DNA of 64,000 bases from assembly GCA_011109175.1 (NCBI GenBank), contig RDEW01000017.1, positions 833,443-897,442 on the forward strand. Direction: 5' to 3'. The DNA comes from Dicyema japonicum. Lineage: Eukaryota > Animalia > Dicyemida. Position 1 is the stretch's first letter. Each line of letters opens with the position of its first letter. The notes beneath the pieces are model-generated. The model worked only from the letters and a program-made list of their open reading frames with translations. It was not told the DNA's origin and searched no databases. Positions 1 to 46,400 of the stretch are shown here, piece after piece. The translations under genes were made by a program, and so were the position numbers.

Positions 1-2250
1 ATGATAATTGAGGACCTCCACAGCCTATGTATACTCAACGATCCTGCATCTCATACAAGAACACCTACTCGACGTAATGATAAACCTTCTTCTATCGACA
101 TCTCATTGTCATCACCGTCCTTGGCCCCACTTATTGACTGGTCAGTGAAGTATGACACCAGGAGTGACCACAACCCAATATTTTTGGAGGTCAAAACAAG
201 GTCACGGATAAAAGGACAATGCCCAACAATAACTAACTACAGCCTTGCGAATTGGAAAGGATTCAAGGAATACGTCGATAATTGTATTGGACTATTAAAT
301 TTCCCCACTTTTCCCTCCGTCGAACAATTAGTGAAATGGTTCAACTCCATTATAAACGATGCGAAAAAGAAGTACATTCCTATGGGGAGACAACCAACGT
401 CATCAAAACGTTTTAACACAACGACGAAACATCTGATCAGAGAACGAAATAATCTAAAGATGGTAAAATCGCCAACAGAAGAGAACATCAGGAAAATACG
501 AGAATTGAACAGAGAGATCGACAACAACATAAAGACAGAAAATGCAAATAGATGGACGAGACTATCGAAAGCTCTCTACAAAAACCCCCCAATGCAAGAG
601 TGTGGAAGTGGATCAAAAACATCAAAAGACCTCCCCAGAGAGAAAAGTCGAAGTCTACATAAAACCAGACACTCTGATAAAATATTACACATCTATATCC
701 TACAGGAAGTTTTCAAAAGAACACCAAGTATTCCTGAAAAAGATTGAACCGAAACGCTCCGATGACTGGATCCTATTTACTAGTCAGGATGTTCGCAGAG
801 CCATATCTAAGGCCAACAACTCAGAGGCCAAAGGACCAGACAACATAACCACATGTGAACTGAAGCACCTAGGCCATCGAGCCCTGGAACTATTAGCCTA
901 TATATTCAACCTATCCATTAACACAAATACAATCCCTGAAATATGGAAGAAGTCTCTAATCAGACCTATCCGAAAACCCAACAAACCAATAGATGAACCA
1001 TCTTCCTATCGCCCAATATCTATTCTAAGTCCGGTCTCAAGGATCCTTGAAAGGCTTGTTTTGGAAAAAATACAAGACTCAATCTCAATACCTCCGACCC
1101 AGCACGGATTCCGGGACAACCATTCGACGACAACACACCTTACAACCCTCACACAATTCATTGCGGAAGGATTTAACTCCCCCAAACCCATCAGAGGACA
1201 GTACTTATATCCGTGGACATCACAAAAGCGTTCGACTCAGTCCCTAGGAAACTCCTAACAAAGAAAATATACGAAACCAACATCCATCCGAACCTGAAAC
1301 TTTGGCTTGGAAACTTCCTAAATGGAAGACGAGCACAAGTACTCTGCAACAACATCAAATCAAGATCTCGCTATTTCCCAAATGGAGTCCCTCAAGGCTC
1401 CCACTATCACCCCAACTCTTCAATCTCTACATAAACGACATGCCACAAACCTGTAATGAAAACTGTCTAATCCTCTCCTATGCCGACGATATCATTCTTG
1501 CTCCAAGAACAGAAGCATTCAATCAGCGACTCAGTTGGCTCAACAAATGCTCGACAACTTGGAACTATGGCTCTCGAAGCGGAGACTTGACACATCAGCA
1601 GCAAAGTCCTTTGTCACACTGTTTACCACCTACAAGAGACAGCTCTGTATCGAACCAAAAGTCTTTATGAAGAACGAAGCTATCTCTATTAACAAAACAC
1701 CGAAGATTCTGGGAGTAACCTTTGATCAGGGACTCACCTTTATCCGGCATGTTGAAAACAGAGTAACTTCTGCTCTGAAAAATGAGAATTTTAAAAGTGC
1801 TCTCAAAAACACTTAGAGATCAAACTGGGATCCTTGCCACGATTTACAAACAATTTATCCAACCAACGATGACGTATGCAAGTCCTTCATGGGCAATGCA
1901 AATGTCACGATCTTCCACATTGAAATTATCTGCAATCGAGGAGACTGCAATAAGGTTAATTGGACCAGATCACAATATCCAACCTATTGAAAATTTTTTA
2001 ATTGAACTACAACGGAAATATTAAAGGAGGCTGTTCTAACAAGCTGCCCTCTATTCCAAATACTATCGAATTATCTACAATCATACAGAAATTTTGAGCC
2101 GAAGCCATGTCCAATGAGAAGAGCTGTTCAGGATTCTCGACCCCGCCGGACTCGTCCTCACCTTTGTCGGTCTGGGATCACTTAGTTAGATGAGAACTTT
2201 TATTTCTTTCTCTTTGACCCAGTGATCCTGGGGGTAATAATAATAATAAC
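1..2250 (+). mobile_element. APE-RT non-LTR retrotransposon (I-group/Ingi-like), frameshifted, cut by the window edge
   Basis: APE C-terminus (SIDISL...SDHNPI); RT motifs KGPDNI, SYRPISIL, QHGFR, DITKAFDSV, GVPQGS, YADD, KILGVTFD spread over shifted frames; 3' stem-loop 2175-2228 and (TAA)n tail 2235-2249. Confidence 0.9.
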
Positions 2251-2479
2251 TAAGGAATACGAATAAGACATAGTGCAATAGAGATGTCGTCACCACCTCA
2301 ACCAGAATGTAAAGCACTCACGTAAAGAAACAACAAATGGCAATATTCGTATTCCTTACCGACTTCTCCGTTCACTCTGGGAACTTTTAATTGCTGAGGA
2401 CTTAAAAAATTTTTACAAAAAAGGTTTTTTTTAAATATCAACTGTCAGAGCCAATGTTCCGCTAAATCTACTCACCATA

Positions 2480-2960
2480 CTGGTCAACTCTGCATGGTAG
2501 GCAATACAAATTTATGGATCGATCCAATAATCGTGGAAACTTCGGGAGTTTCAAAGCAACCTTACAAGAAACATCAACTGACATCTATCAAAATACAACA
2601 TCTCTGTATGCTGTCTACAAAAGATAAAAATGACCGTATAATGTAAGGAACTTTTTGGCAAATTGCACTTTTTACCCTCTCATCGGCCGTCTAAATGACC
2701 AGGTACCCACAAATGTCGCAATGGACAACTACTTCGCACACACAGGAGCCGGATTCTGTGGAAGGCCTAGATCGACACTTCTGACAATCTTGAATGAAAA
2801 CCTATCGGAGTTTGGTATGAGACTAACTTCGGGGGACGACCAGAACTACCTAAGAGAACTAGTGCGCAACACAAGATCATGGTCGAGGCTGACGGAAAGG
2901 ATGATTCGGAAAACGGCACAAGAGAAACTTAACTAATTATTCTCGGGCATCAATTCTGGC
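2480..2960 (+). mobile_element. RTE family A, 3' remnant
   Basis: PTNVAMDNYF...GRPRSTLLTILNENL...LRELVRNTRSWSRL matches the RTE C-termini at 19949-20301 and 43000-43360. Confidence 0.7.
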
Positions 2961-3309
2961 ATATTTGTTAAATATAGCGTTTTTAGAAATAAAGCGAATA
3001 GGGCCTGAGAAAGACATGGATAGTTTTTGGTAGGGGGGTTTGTGTGAAATAGACTTATTCGTATCCACAAATTTCATGTTTTGCTTTTGACAAATAAAGA
3101 GCGTAAATGGATTTGCTGCAAAGAATATATTTTCACATAATCCAAAATAAAAACAAGGATGACTTTCTAAACTTTTCGAGGACCTAACATTTCAGAATTC
3201 ACCATGAAATCAAAAAGATGCTGAGTGGACATGGACTTTGTCGCACAACTGCATTGTGAGGCTTTCTGTCCTCCAAAAAGTAATATTAAGGTTTCATATT
3301 TCACTTTAG

Positions 3310-39871: not shown

Positions 39872-40152
39872 ATAATAAATCAGTTATCGCTCCCCACAGA
39901 CAGAACACACACTTAAAGCAAAGTACAGTTATAATAGCTAATCAAGGAGGATCAAAATGCTCTTCACTTCTTGTTTTCTTTTTCTTGGGTGTATGCCATT
40001 TATAGACGATTCGGTTCCGCAGTGAAGTTCACTGATGACGGCGTCACTCGTCAAGCCAAAGCATATTGATGGAACCTTCAACCAAAATGTGCAGTATCGG
40101 GATTCGAAAAAGCGACCTTCAGGCATCTTGCCCGACAACCGCCACACTGCGC
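39872..40152 (-). mobile_element. SINE family 1, copy c (diverged)
   Basis: Shares TTGACGAGTGACGCCGTCATCAGTG, CACTGCGGAAC, CAAGAAAAAGAAAA and GTGTGTGT blocks with 55509-55822. Confidence 0.75.
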
Positions 40153-40281
40153 CTTTTGAAAAAAAAGATGTCTAAAGATAGAAATATCAATAAAAACAAT
40201 ATCGAAAAATATTTCATGCTAAATTATAATTTCTCTAATAGTAAAACCAAAGAAAATCAATTGTAATTAATTAACACTATG

Positions 40282-43200
40282 TAAGCTGAATTCTTCACAA
40301 ACGCGTTGTAAAGCCTGCATCTAATGTCAATTCCAAGTCCTTTGGCCCTTAGCCATCCTTTCTTCAGCCATTGCCGTATTTGCCAGTGTTTTCTTCCTTA
40401 GTACATCTTCAGCGTCTCATAGTAGAGAGCCGAGCTTATTAGTACGTCTCCATCTTTCATGAGTAATATCGTCTCTTTTGATTTCCGTAATTTCAGTTTT
40501 GTTAACATTTACGCTGAGAAACCATTTTTCTCAAGCTCCGTTGGTGCATTTTCTAGCAGGTGTTGGAGAAAATCCACATCATCCGCATATGATGTCTCTT
40601 CTATGTCGCATTTACGGAGATCGCGGAGTGCAGATTCAAGGTATATGGTAAATAGTAAAGGGGAGAGGGAATCACCCTGGGGTGTCCCAATCGTTGTTTT
40701 GAAACTGCGGGAAGTTGCTCTTTCTGTCCTCACAGATAGTCTTGTGTTCGCAAGTAGTAGTCTGATTATCCTAACCGACGATTCATCCAATATTTGCTCA
40801 AGCACATTCATCAGTTTCTGTCTGTTTATTGAGTCGAAAGCTCTGGAGAGATCTATTCCCAACACGGTCGTTGCGCTCTTGAATCTTTGGTGCGTTGCGC
40901 AGCGCCATCTGTGGCTCCATACAATGTCTGCCGTAGACCTCCCTTCTCGGAACCCACTTTGACTTGCTGGTAGGTATAGATCCGCCACACCCTTTATCCG
41001 GCTTAGTGCAATGTTTGCCAGCACCTTGCGTATCGAATTCAGAAGTATTATCGGGCGGAGATTTTCTACTGGTCTTTTTGATTTGTTCGGTTTTTGTATG
41101 GGTATTAATAATCCATTTCCAAGTCCTAGATCGGTATTAGTTTCAAAGACGTCATTTAGGGTTTTTGCAATTGTGTTGCTAAGTTTTTTTGGCCCATATT
41201 TTAGGAGCTCAGGGCTTATGTTGTCCGGCCCAGCACTCTTGTTGTTTTTCAGTTTATTTATCGCTAATTTCACCTCTTCCACTGTGATTGAGATTTTTAG
41301 CGCCTTTGCTTCTCCTTGGAAAGGGGGAAAGTCATTATTTTCTTTATTCAACAGTGTTTCGAAGTGTCGTGCAATCAATTCTGCTTTTTCTTTTCTGGTT
41401 ACCCACGAATTTTCCATCTTTGTCTTTGATGTGAAGGATGTTTTGTCCTTTCTTTGTCCGCAGCAAAGCCGCATACATCCTTGAATTGTCCTTTAGGCAT
41501 TCCACATCTTTTAATAGAGATGTAATAATTTCCCGTGAGTGTTTTCTGTTCATCTTTTTGATTTTCCATTTTAGTTCCCTTTGTTGGATATTAAGCTCTT
41601 TTTTTTACTCTCGTCTGACGTGTTTGCCGCTTTTAGCCGTAGCTCTCTGCAATGTTTTGCCATATCTGGCACGTTCGGGTGGTGATTTAATTTTAGGGCG
41701 TGATGATTTCGGACTCCAAGGCATATATTGGCCGACTTGGATATTACCTGCTTTGTTTGATCCCACAGAGTTCGTACTGATGATTCCGGTGCGGTTTTCT
41801 CCATAAGAATCTCGATTTGTTCGTGATATTTAGCTCTACAAGTGGGCTCTAACCACAATTTTTCTGTCTGAAAGTATATATTGGGCTTTGTCTCGCCTTC
41901 TTCGCGTTTTCAATGTATTTTTTCCCAGTCAGGTGCTTTTTCCACAGAGTTTTGCAATGACGATCCTGTGGTCGCTGTCAGTTGTTGTCCCCTGGTAGGA
42001 ACGTGCATCATTTAGCAGGTGTTGATCAGACAGATAATGTAGTCGATTTTTTTTTTTTTTTTTTTTTTTGTCCGTTTGTTTTTTTCTTTGTCCGTGCCAC
42101 GTCGTCTTGTGGCAAGCTGAGTGCGTGAAGGCCGTGTTGCACAGGAAAAGGCTATTTGCCTCGCAGAAGTTTACCAGAGAGGCTCCAGATGCATTTCTCC
42201 TTCCGCGCCCGTGTCTTCCAATAGAGGATTCTTCGGGCCCCATTCGCATTCCGGCCTTTGCATTCATATCTCCCGCAACAAAGACAAGGACGAGGAAGTA
42301 TTATTAGAGTATGTGCTTGATAGTTCTGAGTAGAATTCCTCGAGCTCACGGGGTTCTTGATTACTCGTCCACAGTGTGGTGCATAGACATTTATGACAGT
42401 TATATACTCTTGGACGGGCATAGTTCATTTAGTTTGACTTGTAGGACACATATTCGGGCGTTGACTCTCCAAAGCGATGTAATTTTTGAGGTAATCCACG
42501 TGTAGGGCAGGTCCCATGCCGTAGTGCTTGTATTCAGTTGGAAGAGAATCAGTCGGTAATTGCTCCATGTCTCATCGCGTCCATTTTCGATTTTCGTCTC
42601 TTGTAGGAAGCCAATAGATATTTTGTATTTCTCGAGATCGTCACAAAGTACTTTCCTTGTCCAATCTTTCGATATTCCACATGCGTTGAACGTCATTAGC
42701 CTGAATTCTCGATTGTATGATGATTGTTTTTCAGACATTTTTCTTAACCGTTGTACAAAGAAAAAACGAGGCACGTCACCACCTCACCAAAAAACTGTAC
42801 AACGCTGGGACATGGGGAAGTTTTTTCTACGAACTATTGAAACTGGATTCGTTCCATTGAAGGCAACTAAGAAGCTTACTCGGAAAAAACGAGGCACGTC
42901 ACCACCTCACCAAAAACTGTACAAACGCTGGGACATGGGAAGTTTTTTCTACGAACTATTGAAACTGGATTCGTTCCATAGAAGGCAACTAAGAAGCTTA
43001 CTCGGAATGGAGTGGCCACGTAGAATATCAACCACTGGTATCTACAACAAGTGTATGTGTTCTTACATCAGCAAGGATGTGATAGATGCCCGGTGGAGGC
43101 TATTTGGGCATGTACTAAGAATGAACCCGGACCCACCCGCTAACAAAGCGATGGAAGATTACTTTGACAGTTGCGAAAAACCCTTCCGCAGACGACCTAG

Positions 43201-43416
43201 ATCGACACTTCCGAATGCCTTAAACAAAGACTTAAATCGTGTGAGAAAAAATCTAAAGACGGGGGACGACCTGGACGAATTGAGATCACTCGCATTCGAC
43301 AGAGGAAGATGGAAAAGACTAACTATAAATATTGTTTCTTTGAGTGTTGCACATGCGGGGCTATAATCATTATGGCTTTCGTGAAAGTGCCTTAATAATA
43401 ATAAGCTGAATTCTTC
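40282..43416. mobile_element. Near-full-length RTE-A retrotransposon with 5' inversion, TSDs included
   Basis: APE (ATG 42738) and RT run on the minus strand to about 40297; C-terminus and tail run on the plus strand from about 42785 to 43401; TSD TAAGCTGAATTCTTC at 40282-96 and 43402-16. Confidence 0.9.
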
Positions 43417-46400
43417 TCCTCTTTGGGCATTGACCCTCACTGTTCCCATCGAATGCCACTTGAGAAAGCAAATTACTAGACAAGACATCTGTTTCTCTTG
43501 GTTCCTCTTCGACGTTACTTCCGAGTTCAGAGCCTCTTGAGATAGGATGATTTGTCACTCTTGTAACCTCATCATCATAGTTATCAACTTTCAGGCCATG
43601 TCTATGCTATATTATCATGCTCTCTAAAGTTTTTTTGATCGTCGTTGATTAAATATACGCCCTTGTAGAGACATCCACGTTGAGTCTTTTCATATAGGAC
43701 TTGTAGTACTTTGTTACTACTCAATCCCATGTCAAAACAATCGGAATTATTGTCACATTGGCCTTGTGAATTTGTGCTAGTTCTTTTGCAAGAAGGTCGT
43801 ATTTGTAGAGTTTTTCCACTTCAACATGTTTTAGCAAATCTTGGGAAGTGATCCCTATTTCGTTTTTGGATTTATCGTGTACGAAAATATCAGGTTTGTT
43901 ATTTTTAACTTGTATATCCGTTTGTAGTGTTGTATCGACTCGTATTTCAACTTTACTGTTTGACATAATCGATTGGACTGTATGCGTCTTTACCCTCTTG
44001 GTTCTTTTTATTCCAAATTGCCGACATGGTTGCAGGTGTATACATCTTACAACTTCGTTATGTCGCCGCATATACCGGTAAGCATCCTAGTACATCGTGT
44101 AGCCAAGTGATCCACACTCTTTTTGGCCATACCAATTTGCTTTCATCTCTTCAAAGAACAGATTCCAATTTTGTATCATGCAGTACATTGCTTCCGACCT
44201 TGGACTAGTGTTTCCCCAGTAAGCCATTCTGTTGATCCATTGATATCGACATTCGTATTTTCAAAACACCTAAATATAATTGAATGAAGCAATTTCTGAT
44301 TATTCTTCTCCAGATAATTCTTCTTTTATGTTATTCCTTTATATTGTCAGTGTTCAAGTTAGAAATGTCATCCACATTGTATTTGGGTGCAATAAATCTT
44401 GCGATAGTGGTCATATGTGTTTTTCTTGTTTTAAGACTCGCAAGATTCCTGTCCTTCGAAGACACATGGAAGATTTCCTCTCAAGGTCAGGCAAAATTTG
44501 AAATAACATGCATTTACTCTTATCAGAAATTGAGGTTAATCCTTTTCCAAAACTATTCCTGCTAAGATATAATCTTTCTTTGTTGCAGGTTTTAAGTTAG
44601 ATAGTGTATGCCGGAGTTCTAAATCAATAGCTTCAATTCACGAGATTCAATGTCGATAAGTCCAATGTAATAATTATATAGCGAGAGTGCGTATTATTTT
44701 TCGCTTTAAACAAGTTTACAGCGTTTAATTTCGAATTCGCCTGCATCTCTATCCTTTTTTTCACATTTTCAGCAATTTTTTTTATAACTTTGTCTTTCAT
44801 AACCTTACTCCCTTTATCTTCTAACACTCCAAAATAGCGATATCCCTCACATGTTATGTTATGTTGTCCAATTAAGTCGTGTCCGACCCTTGGAGATCTC
44901 ATAAACGAGTTTTTTTAACTCTCCCCGATCCGTTGCAATTTGGAGTAGCCTTGATATAGGCATTCCCGTGACGTCTTCCACCGTGGATAGCAACCGAGTT
45001 TTTGGTCGGCCAGGTCTTCTCTTCCCAGTAATATGGCTCAGCATAATGATTCTTTCCAGTGAATCAGGGGACAACATGCCCAAAGAACACCAATTTGTGT
45101 TTTACGATTTTTCCCTCTAGCGAAATGTCAGTCTCTACCCGTTTGAGTACATCGATGTTTGTTATTTTGGAAGTCCAAGGGATTCTTAGTAACCTCCTCC
45201 AGCACCACAGCTCAAAAGCATTAATTCTTCGCCTATCCGCCTTTTTCAATGTCCTGATTCTGCGCCGTATAGAAAAACCGGGAACACATCCCTTACAACC
45301 ATCCAGATAATTTGTATCTTTGGCGCATTTCAGATTAGTTGCAGACTTTTCACATTTCTTTTAACGTCAACACACCCAGATATTAATCAATATCCTCCAT
45401 CATTTTTAGAATAGTATCTTCATATTCGGCAATTATTTTCAAGTCGTCAATAAAAAGAAAATGGTTAGTCGCACATGTCACAATAGACGGATCACTCTGA
45501 TCAATACATATCTTCGGGAATTTATATTTAATATTCGGATTAGTGGGTCCATTACCAGAGTAAACAACTGAGGAGAGAGTGAGTCTCTTTCAAGATTCCT
45601 CTTCCGAGTTTGATCTTTCCTATTCTTTTTTTGTTAAGGTTCAAAATAACATTCCACTTGCTTATTAAATTCTTGACAAACTTTACAATCCATTCTGGCA
45701 CTCCAGAGCAATCAAGAACACGACACAAAAATTCATGATTAACAGAATCGAAAGCCTTCTTCACATCAATCCATCTTGTGAATAAGCTATTTCCATGTTC
45801 AGCATTAACACACTGATTTATTAAAGCCTGCTCCTTTGCACCTTGGAACTGCCTTCTTGCTCCAAGCTGATTATCGAAGATAAGATTTAACCTTCAACAT
45901 TATCTGTACTATTTGTACTAACACATTTTGTGACAAGTTTGTACAATATAAGCATGCAGCTAATTGGTTGTAAGTCATTCAAAGAACAGCAGTCTTCTAT
46001 TTTCGGAATGAGGTACGTAATCCCTGTATAGAACCATTCTTCTAGGCAATATTCACCACTCACTATCTTGATAATCTCTCCACTCAGATAATTATAAAGA
46101 GAATTAAATTTCTTGACAAAAAATTCACATACTCCCTCACAGCCAGAGCTCTTCCAATTCGGCGTAAAGCGAATAATGTTCTTAACGAACTCAACTGTCA
46201 TATCTAACAGAAACTCCTCTGCTCATGTTATTCGCCTCCCAACAATATTTCTGTGAGAATAATTCTGATCCTTTTCCCATACATCTTTCCAAAATGACAC
46301 GCACTCATCTTCTGTAACTTTAAAATCACTATTATTGACGTCATCGTTGAGCTTCCGATAAAACCTCCTCTTGTTCAGCTCAAAACAAAATTTATTTCGT

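Follow-up and report, generated by a model that had tools for sequence, protein, structure and literature searches.

Two questions are raised by a LINE that is read in opposite directions between a single pair of direct repeats: does it record one retrotransposition event, and if so, by which route did its 5' part become inverted? Such an element lies in the window, the 64-kb stretch of Dicyema japonicum DNA analyzed here. An initial annotation made from the sequence had proposed twin priming, the mechanism by which, as Ostertag and Kazazian reportedly described in 2001, 5'-inverted L1 insertions arise. It had also suggested that twin priming by an RTE element was not commonly described; indeed, no report of it was found in the literature searched.

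We started from the boundaries of the insert. The window contains exactly two copies of the 15-mer TAAGCTGAATTCTTC (Table 1), which form a perfect direct repeat enclosing a single 3.1-kb insert, as had been noted initially. The insert interrupts another LINE, for which 40 paralogues with 83-91% identity were found in the genome. Eleven of these host paralogues lack the insert and are colinear with the window over the site, from about 40242 to 43417 and beyond, and each contains the duplicated sequence once, as TATGCAAGCTGAATTCTTCTCC. The presence of one copy of the repeat in these 11 empty sites demonstrates that there was one insertion with a real target-site duplication. The length of this duplication is 14-15 bp, because the paralogues have a C in place of the T of TAAG, which could come from the tail or from a mutation. 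When the insert was deleted in silico, the sequence became colinear with the 11 paralogous copies, and the host ORF ended in ...QCPKRRRIQL-T-stop, as expected from the restored end (QCPKRRRIQLT*) reported in the initial annotation. No long ORF was found near the insertion site in the host copy of the window or in the 11 paralogues.

The inserted element was compared by blastn with a natural full-length copy of its family (L003:1472-4525; 3,054 bp), which encodes APE and RT and has a TAA-repeat tail. Window positions 42789 to 40294 correspond to element positions 1-2555 in inverted orientation, and positions 42916-43404 correspond to element positions 2565-3053 in direct orientation (96.9% identity). 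The break end of the inverted arm adjoins the left duplication, with element position 2555 at 40294-40297 and position 1 at 42789. This arm extends to the same extreme 5' end as normal full-length copies and has neither the 3' end nor the tail of the element. The direct arm is in sense orientation, carries the family tail and adjoins the right (3') duplication. One duplication surrounds both arms, and none surrounds the inverted or the direct arm singly. Regarding the coding capacity, the minus strand reads leftward from the ATG through the APE and RT regions to ...RCRLYNAFVK at the left repeat, in agreement with the initial reading, and a 321-aa ORF of this arm matches RVT_1 (E=8e-26; 40509-41474). 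Frameshifts and an expanded homopolymer (42047-42069) disrupt the arm. On the plus strand, the reading restarts at LYNAGTWG... and finishes at the family tail, TTAATAATAA. This resumption had been described as the immediately following part of the same protein, which is correct except that the arms are not strictly contiguous: nine nucleotides (element positions 2556-2564, three codons) are missing at the break when it is read against 12 natural copies.

Table 1 Features of the inverted insertion and of its surroundings in the window
Feature	Position	Strand	Remarks
Host LINE 3' end, downstream of the insertion site	40242-40281	-	Named Dong-like in the initial annotation
Target-site duplication, left copy	40282-40296	+	Last 3 nt (TTC) complementary to element positions 2553-2555
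Inverted 5' arm, element positions 1 to 2552/2555	40297-42789	-	5' UTR, ATG at 42738, APE and most of RT
Two tandem 122-bp units	42760-42881 and 42882-43003	+	TRF period 122, 2.0 copies, 96% matches
A-run at the inversion joint	42790-42794	+	Complement of the variable T-run before position 1 in normal full-length copies
Direct 3' arm, element positions 2565-3053	42916-43401	+	RT C-terminal part, 3' UTR and TAA-repeat tail (43392-43401)
Target-site duplication, right copy	43402-43416	+	1-3 nt at its start are shared with the TAA tail
Host LINE upstream of the insertion site, degenerate ORF end	43417-44071	-	From the ORF list

A first look gave 686 candidate members of the element's family, which has hundreds of copies. 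The natural ones measure 3,025-3,054 bp, with Exo_endo_phos and RVT_1 domains on their ORFs, and the best homologues are APE-RT proteins of 980-1,010 aa encoded on contigs of 3.0-3.9 kb. The 3' tail consists of AAT/TAA repeats in 12 copies. Target-site duplications of normal copies are 8-13 bp, near the length published for RTE elements, which peaks at 10-12 bp (cited in PMC4245944). None of the 19 family copies examined has a single unbroken ORF, and no Rfam match to a ribozyme was obtained at the 5' end of the element. The predicted architecture (APE and RT, no ORF1, about 3 kb, a short-repeat tail), together with these unnamed homologues, fits the RTE label.

Do the two arms derive from the same molecule? 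Divergence is 79/2483 in the inverted arm (~2.3% when a misaligned homopolymer block is left out) and 12/484 (2.5%) in the direct arm. Variants of the L010/L015 sublineage are found in both, eight and six in the inverted arm and five and three in the direct arm. The similar substitution load and the shared sublineage markers are consistent with an origin of both arms from one source RNA, without being proof of it. The initial annotation had regarded arms of clearly different subfamilies, or a large overlap or gap at the break, as incompatible with its proposal; we found neither, the breakpoints being at 2555 and 2565. These observations also bear on the idea that a 5'-truncated copy and a second, head-to-head copy were inserted independently. 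Nesting is common in this genome, and it places same-family fragments side by side on opposite strands, as here. Indeed, another candidate for an inversion, C135:445944, was rejected because it is a nested insertion, flanked by a 7-bp duplication of its own. However, nesting keeps both halves of the interrupted copy and an inner duplication, whereas the present locus has no second half and its sole duplication encloses both arms. An inverted arm lacking the 3' end and the tail cannot be produced by target-primed insertion, the breakpoints abut, and the arms do not differ in divergence or markers. Two independent insertions are thus already contradicted by the structure, and we give this scenario next to no chance.

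The initial account did not include a 122-bp tandem duplication that lies over the inversion joint. Each unit includes this joint: its first 36 bp are the 5' end in reverse complement and the remaining 86 bp belong to the direct arm. Three of the four differences between the units are homopolymer lengths. This duplication arose after the insertion. The first 92 nt of the direct arm are preceded by an earlier duplicate at 42794-42885. It should be noted that the last A of the A-run at the joint could alternatively be element position 2565.

The source assembly appears to be a merged short-read and PacBio RS II hybrid (PMC6736024), and the inversion, perhaps together with the 122-bp duplication, could in principle have been created in it by the mis-joining of repeat copies. 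The high copy number of the family and the homopolymer differences between the 122-bp units, which are typical of long-read errors, would be in line with such an artefact, as would the fact that no joint was shown to be bridged by the contigs of public runs; these contigs are too short for the joints, and their depth comes mostly from other family copies. A mis-join, however, requires shared sequence, and the inversion joint has none. Moreover, private substitutions occur at an equal rate in both arms, which also carry the same sublineage markers, the breakpoints abut in element coordinates, the whole block lies within a duplication proven by the paralogues, and the same geometry is found at an independent locus (see below). 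An assembly artefact is therefore very unlikely. Two skip joints in the contigs of the public runs (40279 to 43403 and 40278 to 43414) were considered as an empty allele of the insertion, but they carry the paralogue letter (GCAAGCTGAA) and were assigned to paralogous host copies.

The genome was then surveyed for other inverted copies, a check that had been recommended initially. A second, clean case is present on another contig (locus G000:C101, 276900-280800), where reverse-complemented element positions 1629 to 1 are followed by positions 1641-3049 and the tail. A perfect duplication of 11 bp, TCACCGCAATT, encloses this copy, which has an 11-nt gap at the break and 2 nt of microhomology. 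L010/L015 markers are located on each side of the break. The direct arm of this copy also includes a 200-bp block of a different sublineage (L018), which indicates either a mosaic source or a later conversion. At a third locus (G000:C135), reverse-complemented positions 2935 to 1 are followed by positions 2930-3049 and the tail, with an overlap of ~6 nt and a degenerate duplication; this is probably an older 5'-inverted case. Another candidate, C35:330243, was rejected, as it is a 5'-truncated 3' fragment adjoining another element whose resemblance is limited to positions 1-99. The 5'-inverted type represents about 2 of 55 copies keeping the 5' end, in a census that is biased towards such copies. 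In 3/3 cases (the window, C101 and C135), the inverted arm reaches position 1 of the element. The target-site duplications of the inverted copies are 11-15 bp long.

The recurrence at C101 also bears on a later rearrangement of DNA. Two breaks, at the 5' boundary and near position 2560, could have flipped an ordinary full-length insertion afterwards, and the outcome would match the observed structure exactly. One of these breaks would have had to fall exactly at the boundary between duplication and element, with a chance of roughly 1 in 1000 per event, and the same coincidence would be needed again at C101. We consider this explanation extremely unlikely.

At the break, the element shares a microhomology with the end of the target. 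The initial annotation had described the end of the duplication, CTTC, as complementary to the element at this point. Microhomology is indeed present, but it comprises 3 nt (GAA/TTC) and not 4, as 12/12 natural copies read GTGAAACC here. By itself, a 3-nt match is weak, being expected about 1 time in 64. We also considered that the 9-nt loss could be the footprint of an annealed overhang (AATTC), and rejected this idea: such longer pairing between overhang and RNA does not exceed chance, with 17% of element windows scoring as well, and AATTC is moreover a private variant of one natural copy.

The target-site duplication, the orientation of the arms, the near-abutting breaks, the microhomology, the equal divergence and the recurrence at C101 all agree with the twin-priming geometry recognized in the initial annotation. 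The insert is probably the product of one retrotransposition event of an RTE-type LINE that was completed by twin priming. We infer the following order of events. The element endonuclease would have nicked the bottom strand of the target within the last codons of the older LINE, and reverse transcription would have begun at the TAA-repeat tail of the element RNA, the first cDNA giving the direct arm. The top strand would then have been cut 14-15 nt downstream, and the last 3 nt of the freed top-strand 3' overhang (...GAATTCTTC-3') may have paired with GAA at positions 2553-2555 of the same RNA. From there, the overhang would have primed a second cDNA up to the 5' end of the RNA, giving the inverted arm, including the terminal T-run of ordinary full-length copies. 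The first cDNA would have halted at position 2565, 9 nt before the second priming site. The two cDNA ends would have been joined with 0-1 nt of homology, and gap filling would have created the target-site duplication. Afterwards, the 122 bp over the joint would have been tandemly duplicated while the copy decayed (~2.4% substitutions).

We likewise infer that the inverted arm was templated by RNA, from the top-strand end. Alternatively, a full first-strand cDNA or a double-stranded intermediate might have broken near position 2560, with the distal piece (1-2555) end-joined in reverse without a second priming. This would likewise lead to the observed geometry, to a few bases lost at the break and to a short microhomology, and the inverted arm would always extend to position 1, as it does in all three cases. 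Arms of full length would nevertheless also result if a processive RT copied the 3-kb RNA, and the census favored copies keeping the 5' end. In addition, this route would need both ends of a free fragment to be captured, no LINE pathway of this kind is documented in the literature examined, and the position of the microhomology, right at the 3' end of the duplicated target, is the one that priming requires. We thus view end-joining of a broken cDNA as improbable and retain twin priming.

The comparison with L1 is close in several respects. As here, twin-primed L1 insertions have a single target-site duplication, normal to long, around the composite, a sense 3' arm with the tail, an antisense 5' arm whose break end lies at the 5' duplication, a few bases lost or overlapping at the break, and 2-5 nt of microhomology at the 5' junction without extra nucleotides. 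About 95% of 5'-inverted L1 copies have microhomology at this junction, mostly 2-5 bp (PMC2912911). Unlike L1, the element described here is of the RTE type, with a single APE-RT protein, a length of 3 kb and, where L1 has poly(A), a TAA-repeat tail. It resides in a small invertebrate genome, and in each of the three cases its inverted arm extends all the way to the RNA 5' end. The frequency of inversion also looks low next to the about 31% of human and chimpanzee L1 insertions that are 5'-inverted (PMC2912911), although the two figures were measured differently.

In an experimental assay, 5' inversions were obtained only for L1 in human cells, apart from a single Nimb-2_DR insert (PMC4245944). 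As other LINEs gave none or one in such cell assays, it was proposed that 5' inversion takes place only if the 3' overhang is long and particular host factors are present (PMC4245944). The Nimb-2_DR insert, recovered in chicken DT40 cells, resembles our cases in being a 5'-inverted non-L1 LINE with a duplication of ~12 bp (PMC4245944). It is, however, one cell-culture event of a zebrafish I-clade element, whereas the copies reported here are natural germline copies of the RTE type at two or more loci. The duplications of 11-15 bp in inverted copies, compared with 8-13 bp in normal ones, fit the long-overhang proposal.

Twin priming accounts for about 30% of primate L1 insertions and has so far been documented almost only for L1 and L1-mobilized RNAs. 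The present copies add natural cases with clear boundaries: they belong to a LINE type unrelated to L1, their duplications measure 11-15 bp, and the animal genome that carries them is distant and highly reduced. As the initial annotation had surmised, an invertebrate RTE can probably do the same as L1: the footprint in the window recurs in at least one further copy of the same genome, C101, with its own break and duplication, and the mechanism is therefore probably not confined to L1. These cases support the overhang-length model and suggest that, in elements other than L1 too, the end of the second strand can serve as a primer on RNA. It is important to note that 5'-inverted copies appear in repeat annotation as two opposite-strand fragments and could pass for nested insertions or assembly errors. 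On balance, we lean slightly towards a wider reading, in which twin priming would be a regular by-product of RTE retrotransposition in this genome (at least three events, or a few percent of 5'-complete copies), with a second RT reaction that regularly reaches the 5' end of the RNA. Twin priming may then belong generally to target-primed reverse transcription where the staggered cuts are long, and depend on overhang length and host factors, not on L1 itself.

From an ATG at 42738, the minus strand reads leftward across an endonuclease region and an RT region (RVT_1, E=8e-26) to ...RCRLYNAFVK at the left repeat, as stated in the initial annotation. The plus strand was said to continue with the next part of the same protein; it does resume, with LYNAGTWG, and TTAATAATAA lies directly before the right repeat, but the continuation is not immediately contiguous, as 9 nt are absent. 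Element coordinates were taken from a single natural full-length copy (L003:1472-4525) and not from a consensus.

Arms of the window copy placed on the natural full-length copy
Feature	Window	Element	Orientation	Basis
Inverted arm	42789 to 40294	1-2555	inverted	alignment to L003
Direct arm	42916-43404	2565-3053	direct	alignment to L003

All 12 natural copies compared read GTGAAACC(G/A)AT(C/T)CTACTGTA across the break; relative to them, the window copy is without element positions 2556-2564, that is, three codons. The GAA at 2553-2555 may be counted with the element or, equally, with the TTC end of the duplication, and so constitutes a microhomology of 3 nt. Microhomology at the break had been proposed earlier and is indeed present, but the length of 4 nt then inferred was read from a member of a different family. 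The inverted arm closes, at the inner joint, with the complement of position 1 and 4-5 A, corresponding to the terminal T-run of normal full-length copies. A 23-nt homopolymer at 42047-42069 (T on the plus strand, an A-run in the element sense) lies within the endonuclease coding region, is far longer than in young copies and disrupts the frame.

The 15-mer TAAGCTGAATTCTTC, previously noted as a direct repeat, has exactly two occurrences in the window (40282-40296 and 43402-43416). The interrupted host LINE is degenerate and older than the insert and has at least 40 paralogues in the genome (83-91% identity, compared with the right flank). An empty site was reconstructed from the left flank, a single repeat copy and the right flank and was aligned with 11 host LINE paralogues; all 11 were colinear through the joint, with the duplicated sequence present once as TATGCAAGCTGAATTCTTCTCC, indicating that the host copy was formerly like its paralogues. 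Judged from these alignments, the whole insert between the repeats is the product of one event, or at least of one staggered break. The first base of the duplication is T in the window and C in the paralogues, and TAA is the tail unit, so the duplication is 14-15 bp long. An assembly error would not yield abutting breakpoints within a duplication confirmed by paralogues, and we consider it very unlikely. Parts of the stretch are present, as short contigs, in six public runs; over 39900-43900 other copies predominate, and no contig was shown across any of the joints. The apparent "empty" joints in these contigs bear the paralogue base and are therefore derived from other copies of the host LINE.

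The host LINE, termed Dong-like in the initial annotation, retains a remnant ORF of 116 aa (window 43721-44071, minus strand) that includes the stretch KPDIFVHD...IGITS, which we take to resemble the PD-(D/E)xK motif of restriction-like endonucleases; such a stretch would fit a Dong/R4-type label. Immediately left of its 3' end (39950-40153) is a repeat of ~200 bp; genome-wide, its first-look candidates number at least 1,793 at 84-90% identity, which suggests a short element of very high copy number.

For the divergence of the two arms, a site was scored only if three quarters or more of 12 young copies had the same base. On this basis, 79 of 2,483 sites differ in the inverted arm (~2.3% after removal of a misaligned homopolymer block) and 12 of 484 in the direct arm (2.5%). 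Two natural copies, L010 and L015, point to the same sublineage for both arms: L010 has 8 variants in common with the inverted arm and 5 with the direct arm, and L015 has 6 and 3, respectively. The halves, alike in both respects, are thus not clearly different subfamilies, a possibility raised beforehand. Two independent insertions, the least probable of the explanations weighed, are incompatible with an arm that has no tail. Inversion of an ordinary full-length insertion at the DNA level would require that a break fall precisely on the boundary of the element on two occasions, and is highly improbable.

A feature missing from the initial annotation is a tandem duplication of two 122-bp units at 42760-42881 and 42882-43003 (96% alike by TRF). 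Each unit contains the inversion joint: 36 nt come from the 5' end, in reverse complement, and 86 nt from the direct arm; hence, the joint predates the tandem duplication. The units differ in four places, three of them in homopolymer length, so a share of their divergence may be sequencing error. GAA-type microhomology is seen at the edges of 42760-43003.

The family comprises 686 first-look candidates, with ~25 full-length copies among 40 scored. Full-length copies (3,025-3,054 bp, 97-99.5% mutual identity) have a variable T-run, then the start TGGTGAGGTGGTGACG, and end 3' in AAT/TAA repeats. Natural-copy ORFs carry Exo_endo_phos and RVT_1 domains, and the nearest proteins (39-50% identity) are APE-RT proteins of 980-1,010 aa on 3.0-3.9-kb contigs from molluscs, a sponge and oomycetes. 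These homologues, a length of 3 kb, a tail of TAA repeats and duplications of ~10 bp suggest that the element is RTE-like. None of 19 natural copies (L002-L020) had an unbroken APE-RT ORF; their longest ORFs are an APE part of 394 aa and an RT part of 586 aa, split near element 1236/1255. The split could reflect real decay, a two-ORF design or long-read indel errors of the assembly. The published assembly of Dicyema japonicum (67.5 Mb, 377 scaffolds, N50 1,000.2 kb) merged Platanus and Falcon (PMC6736024). About 37 of 77 sampled matches to the 5' motif (e.g., L048-L051, L054 and L057) resemble the RTE only at positions 1-29 and then diverge, so a second abundant family has the first 29 nt of the RTE. 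A 1.6-kb relative at C135:445944-447523 has both its 5' and 3' ends in common with the RTE.

Other inverted copies in the genome had been suggested as a check; a clean second locus lies on contig C101 and a probable third on C135. On C101 (L045, G000:C101:274500-282500), two neighboring family matches lie on opposite strands, in the order reverse-complemented 1629..1, 6-7 A, and 1641..3049 plus tail, with the perfect 11-bp duplication TCACCGCAATT on both sides. Its break shows 11 nt lost and a 2-nt microhomology, and L010/L015-type variants occur on either side. Within the direct arm, a 200-bp stretch (element 1884-2087) instead has 13 variants in common with L018, which indicates either a mosaic source or later conversion. 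This arm is also split by a later 870-bp insertion, and 27 nt stand in place of ~60 nt near element 2140-2199 (these features lie at L045 4047-5226 and 5226-6097). The C135 locus, probably an older third inverted copy, reads reverse-complemented 2935..1, with a 1.6-kb relative nested inside it, and then 2930..3049 plus tail; its flanks match at 10 of 13 bases.

A census used a 20-nt motif of the 5' end, which gave 240 matches at ≤2 mismatches; upstream flanks were inspected for 93 of the 100 exact matches listed. About 55 of the 93 were RTE family members, among which only the window copy and the C101 copy were inverted, in a census blind to inversions whose inverted arm is 5'-truncated. Two look-alikes were rejected as inversions: C135:445944 is a nested insertion bounded by a separate 7-bp duplication, and L056 (G000:C35:330149-330343) adjoins a different element. 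L056 is a 5'-truncated 3' fragment of the RTE (element 2958-3050, minus strand); its neighbor, whose 5' end is 3 bp away, is a plus-strand element resembling the RTE only at positions 1-99. Either nesting or a two-template inversion could have given this arrangement.

The structure of the insert is what twin priming predicts, and this interpretation stood, with minor corrections. First-strand synthesis would begin at the tail, on the bottom-strand nick, with the top strand cut 14-15 nt away. The top-strand 3' overhang would then anneal internally on the RNA and prime a second cDNA toward the RNA 5' end, the first cDNA would halt just short of the second priming site, and the two cDNA ends would be joined. 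Duplications are 11-15 bp in inverted copies versus 8-13 bp in normal family copies, which fits a proposed requirement for a long overhang (PMC4245944). Extended pairing of the overhang with the lost 9 nt was not above chance; the evidential weight is on the terminal microhomology only and not on longer overhang pairing. Alternatively, a distal cDNA piece might have been re-ligated in reverse at integration, with no second priming. This would account for every inverted arm reaching position 1, and we regard it as unlikely.

Among L1 insertions specific to human and chimpanzee, ~31% are 5'-inverted, and ~95% of 5'-inverted L1 show microhomology at the 5' junction, with extra nucleotides in few (PMC2912911). 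In cell assays, 5' inversions came only from L1 in human cells and from one Nimb-2_DR insert in DT40 cells, and the RTE duplication peak is cited as 10-12 bp (PMC4245944). Consistent with the suspected lack of precedent, no report of twin priming for RTE was found (RTE, BovB, invertebrate; usage of the term since 2015), a provisional result as most subscription literature lay outside the search. The finding is genuine, with further instances at other loci; it extends a known mechanism to one more LINE type and one more animal lineage and is not a new kind of system.
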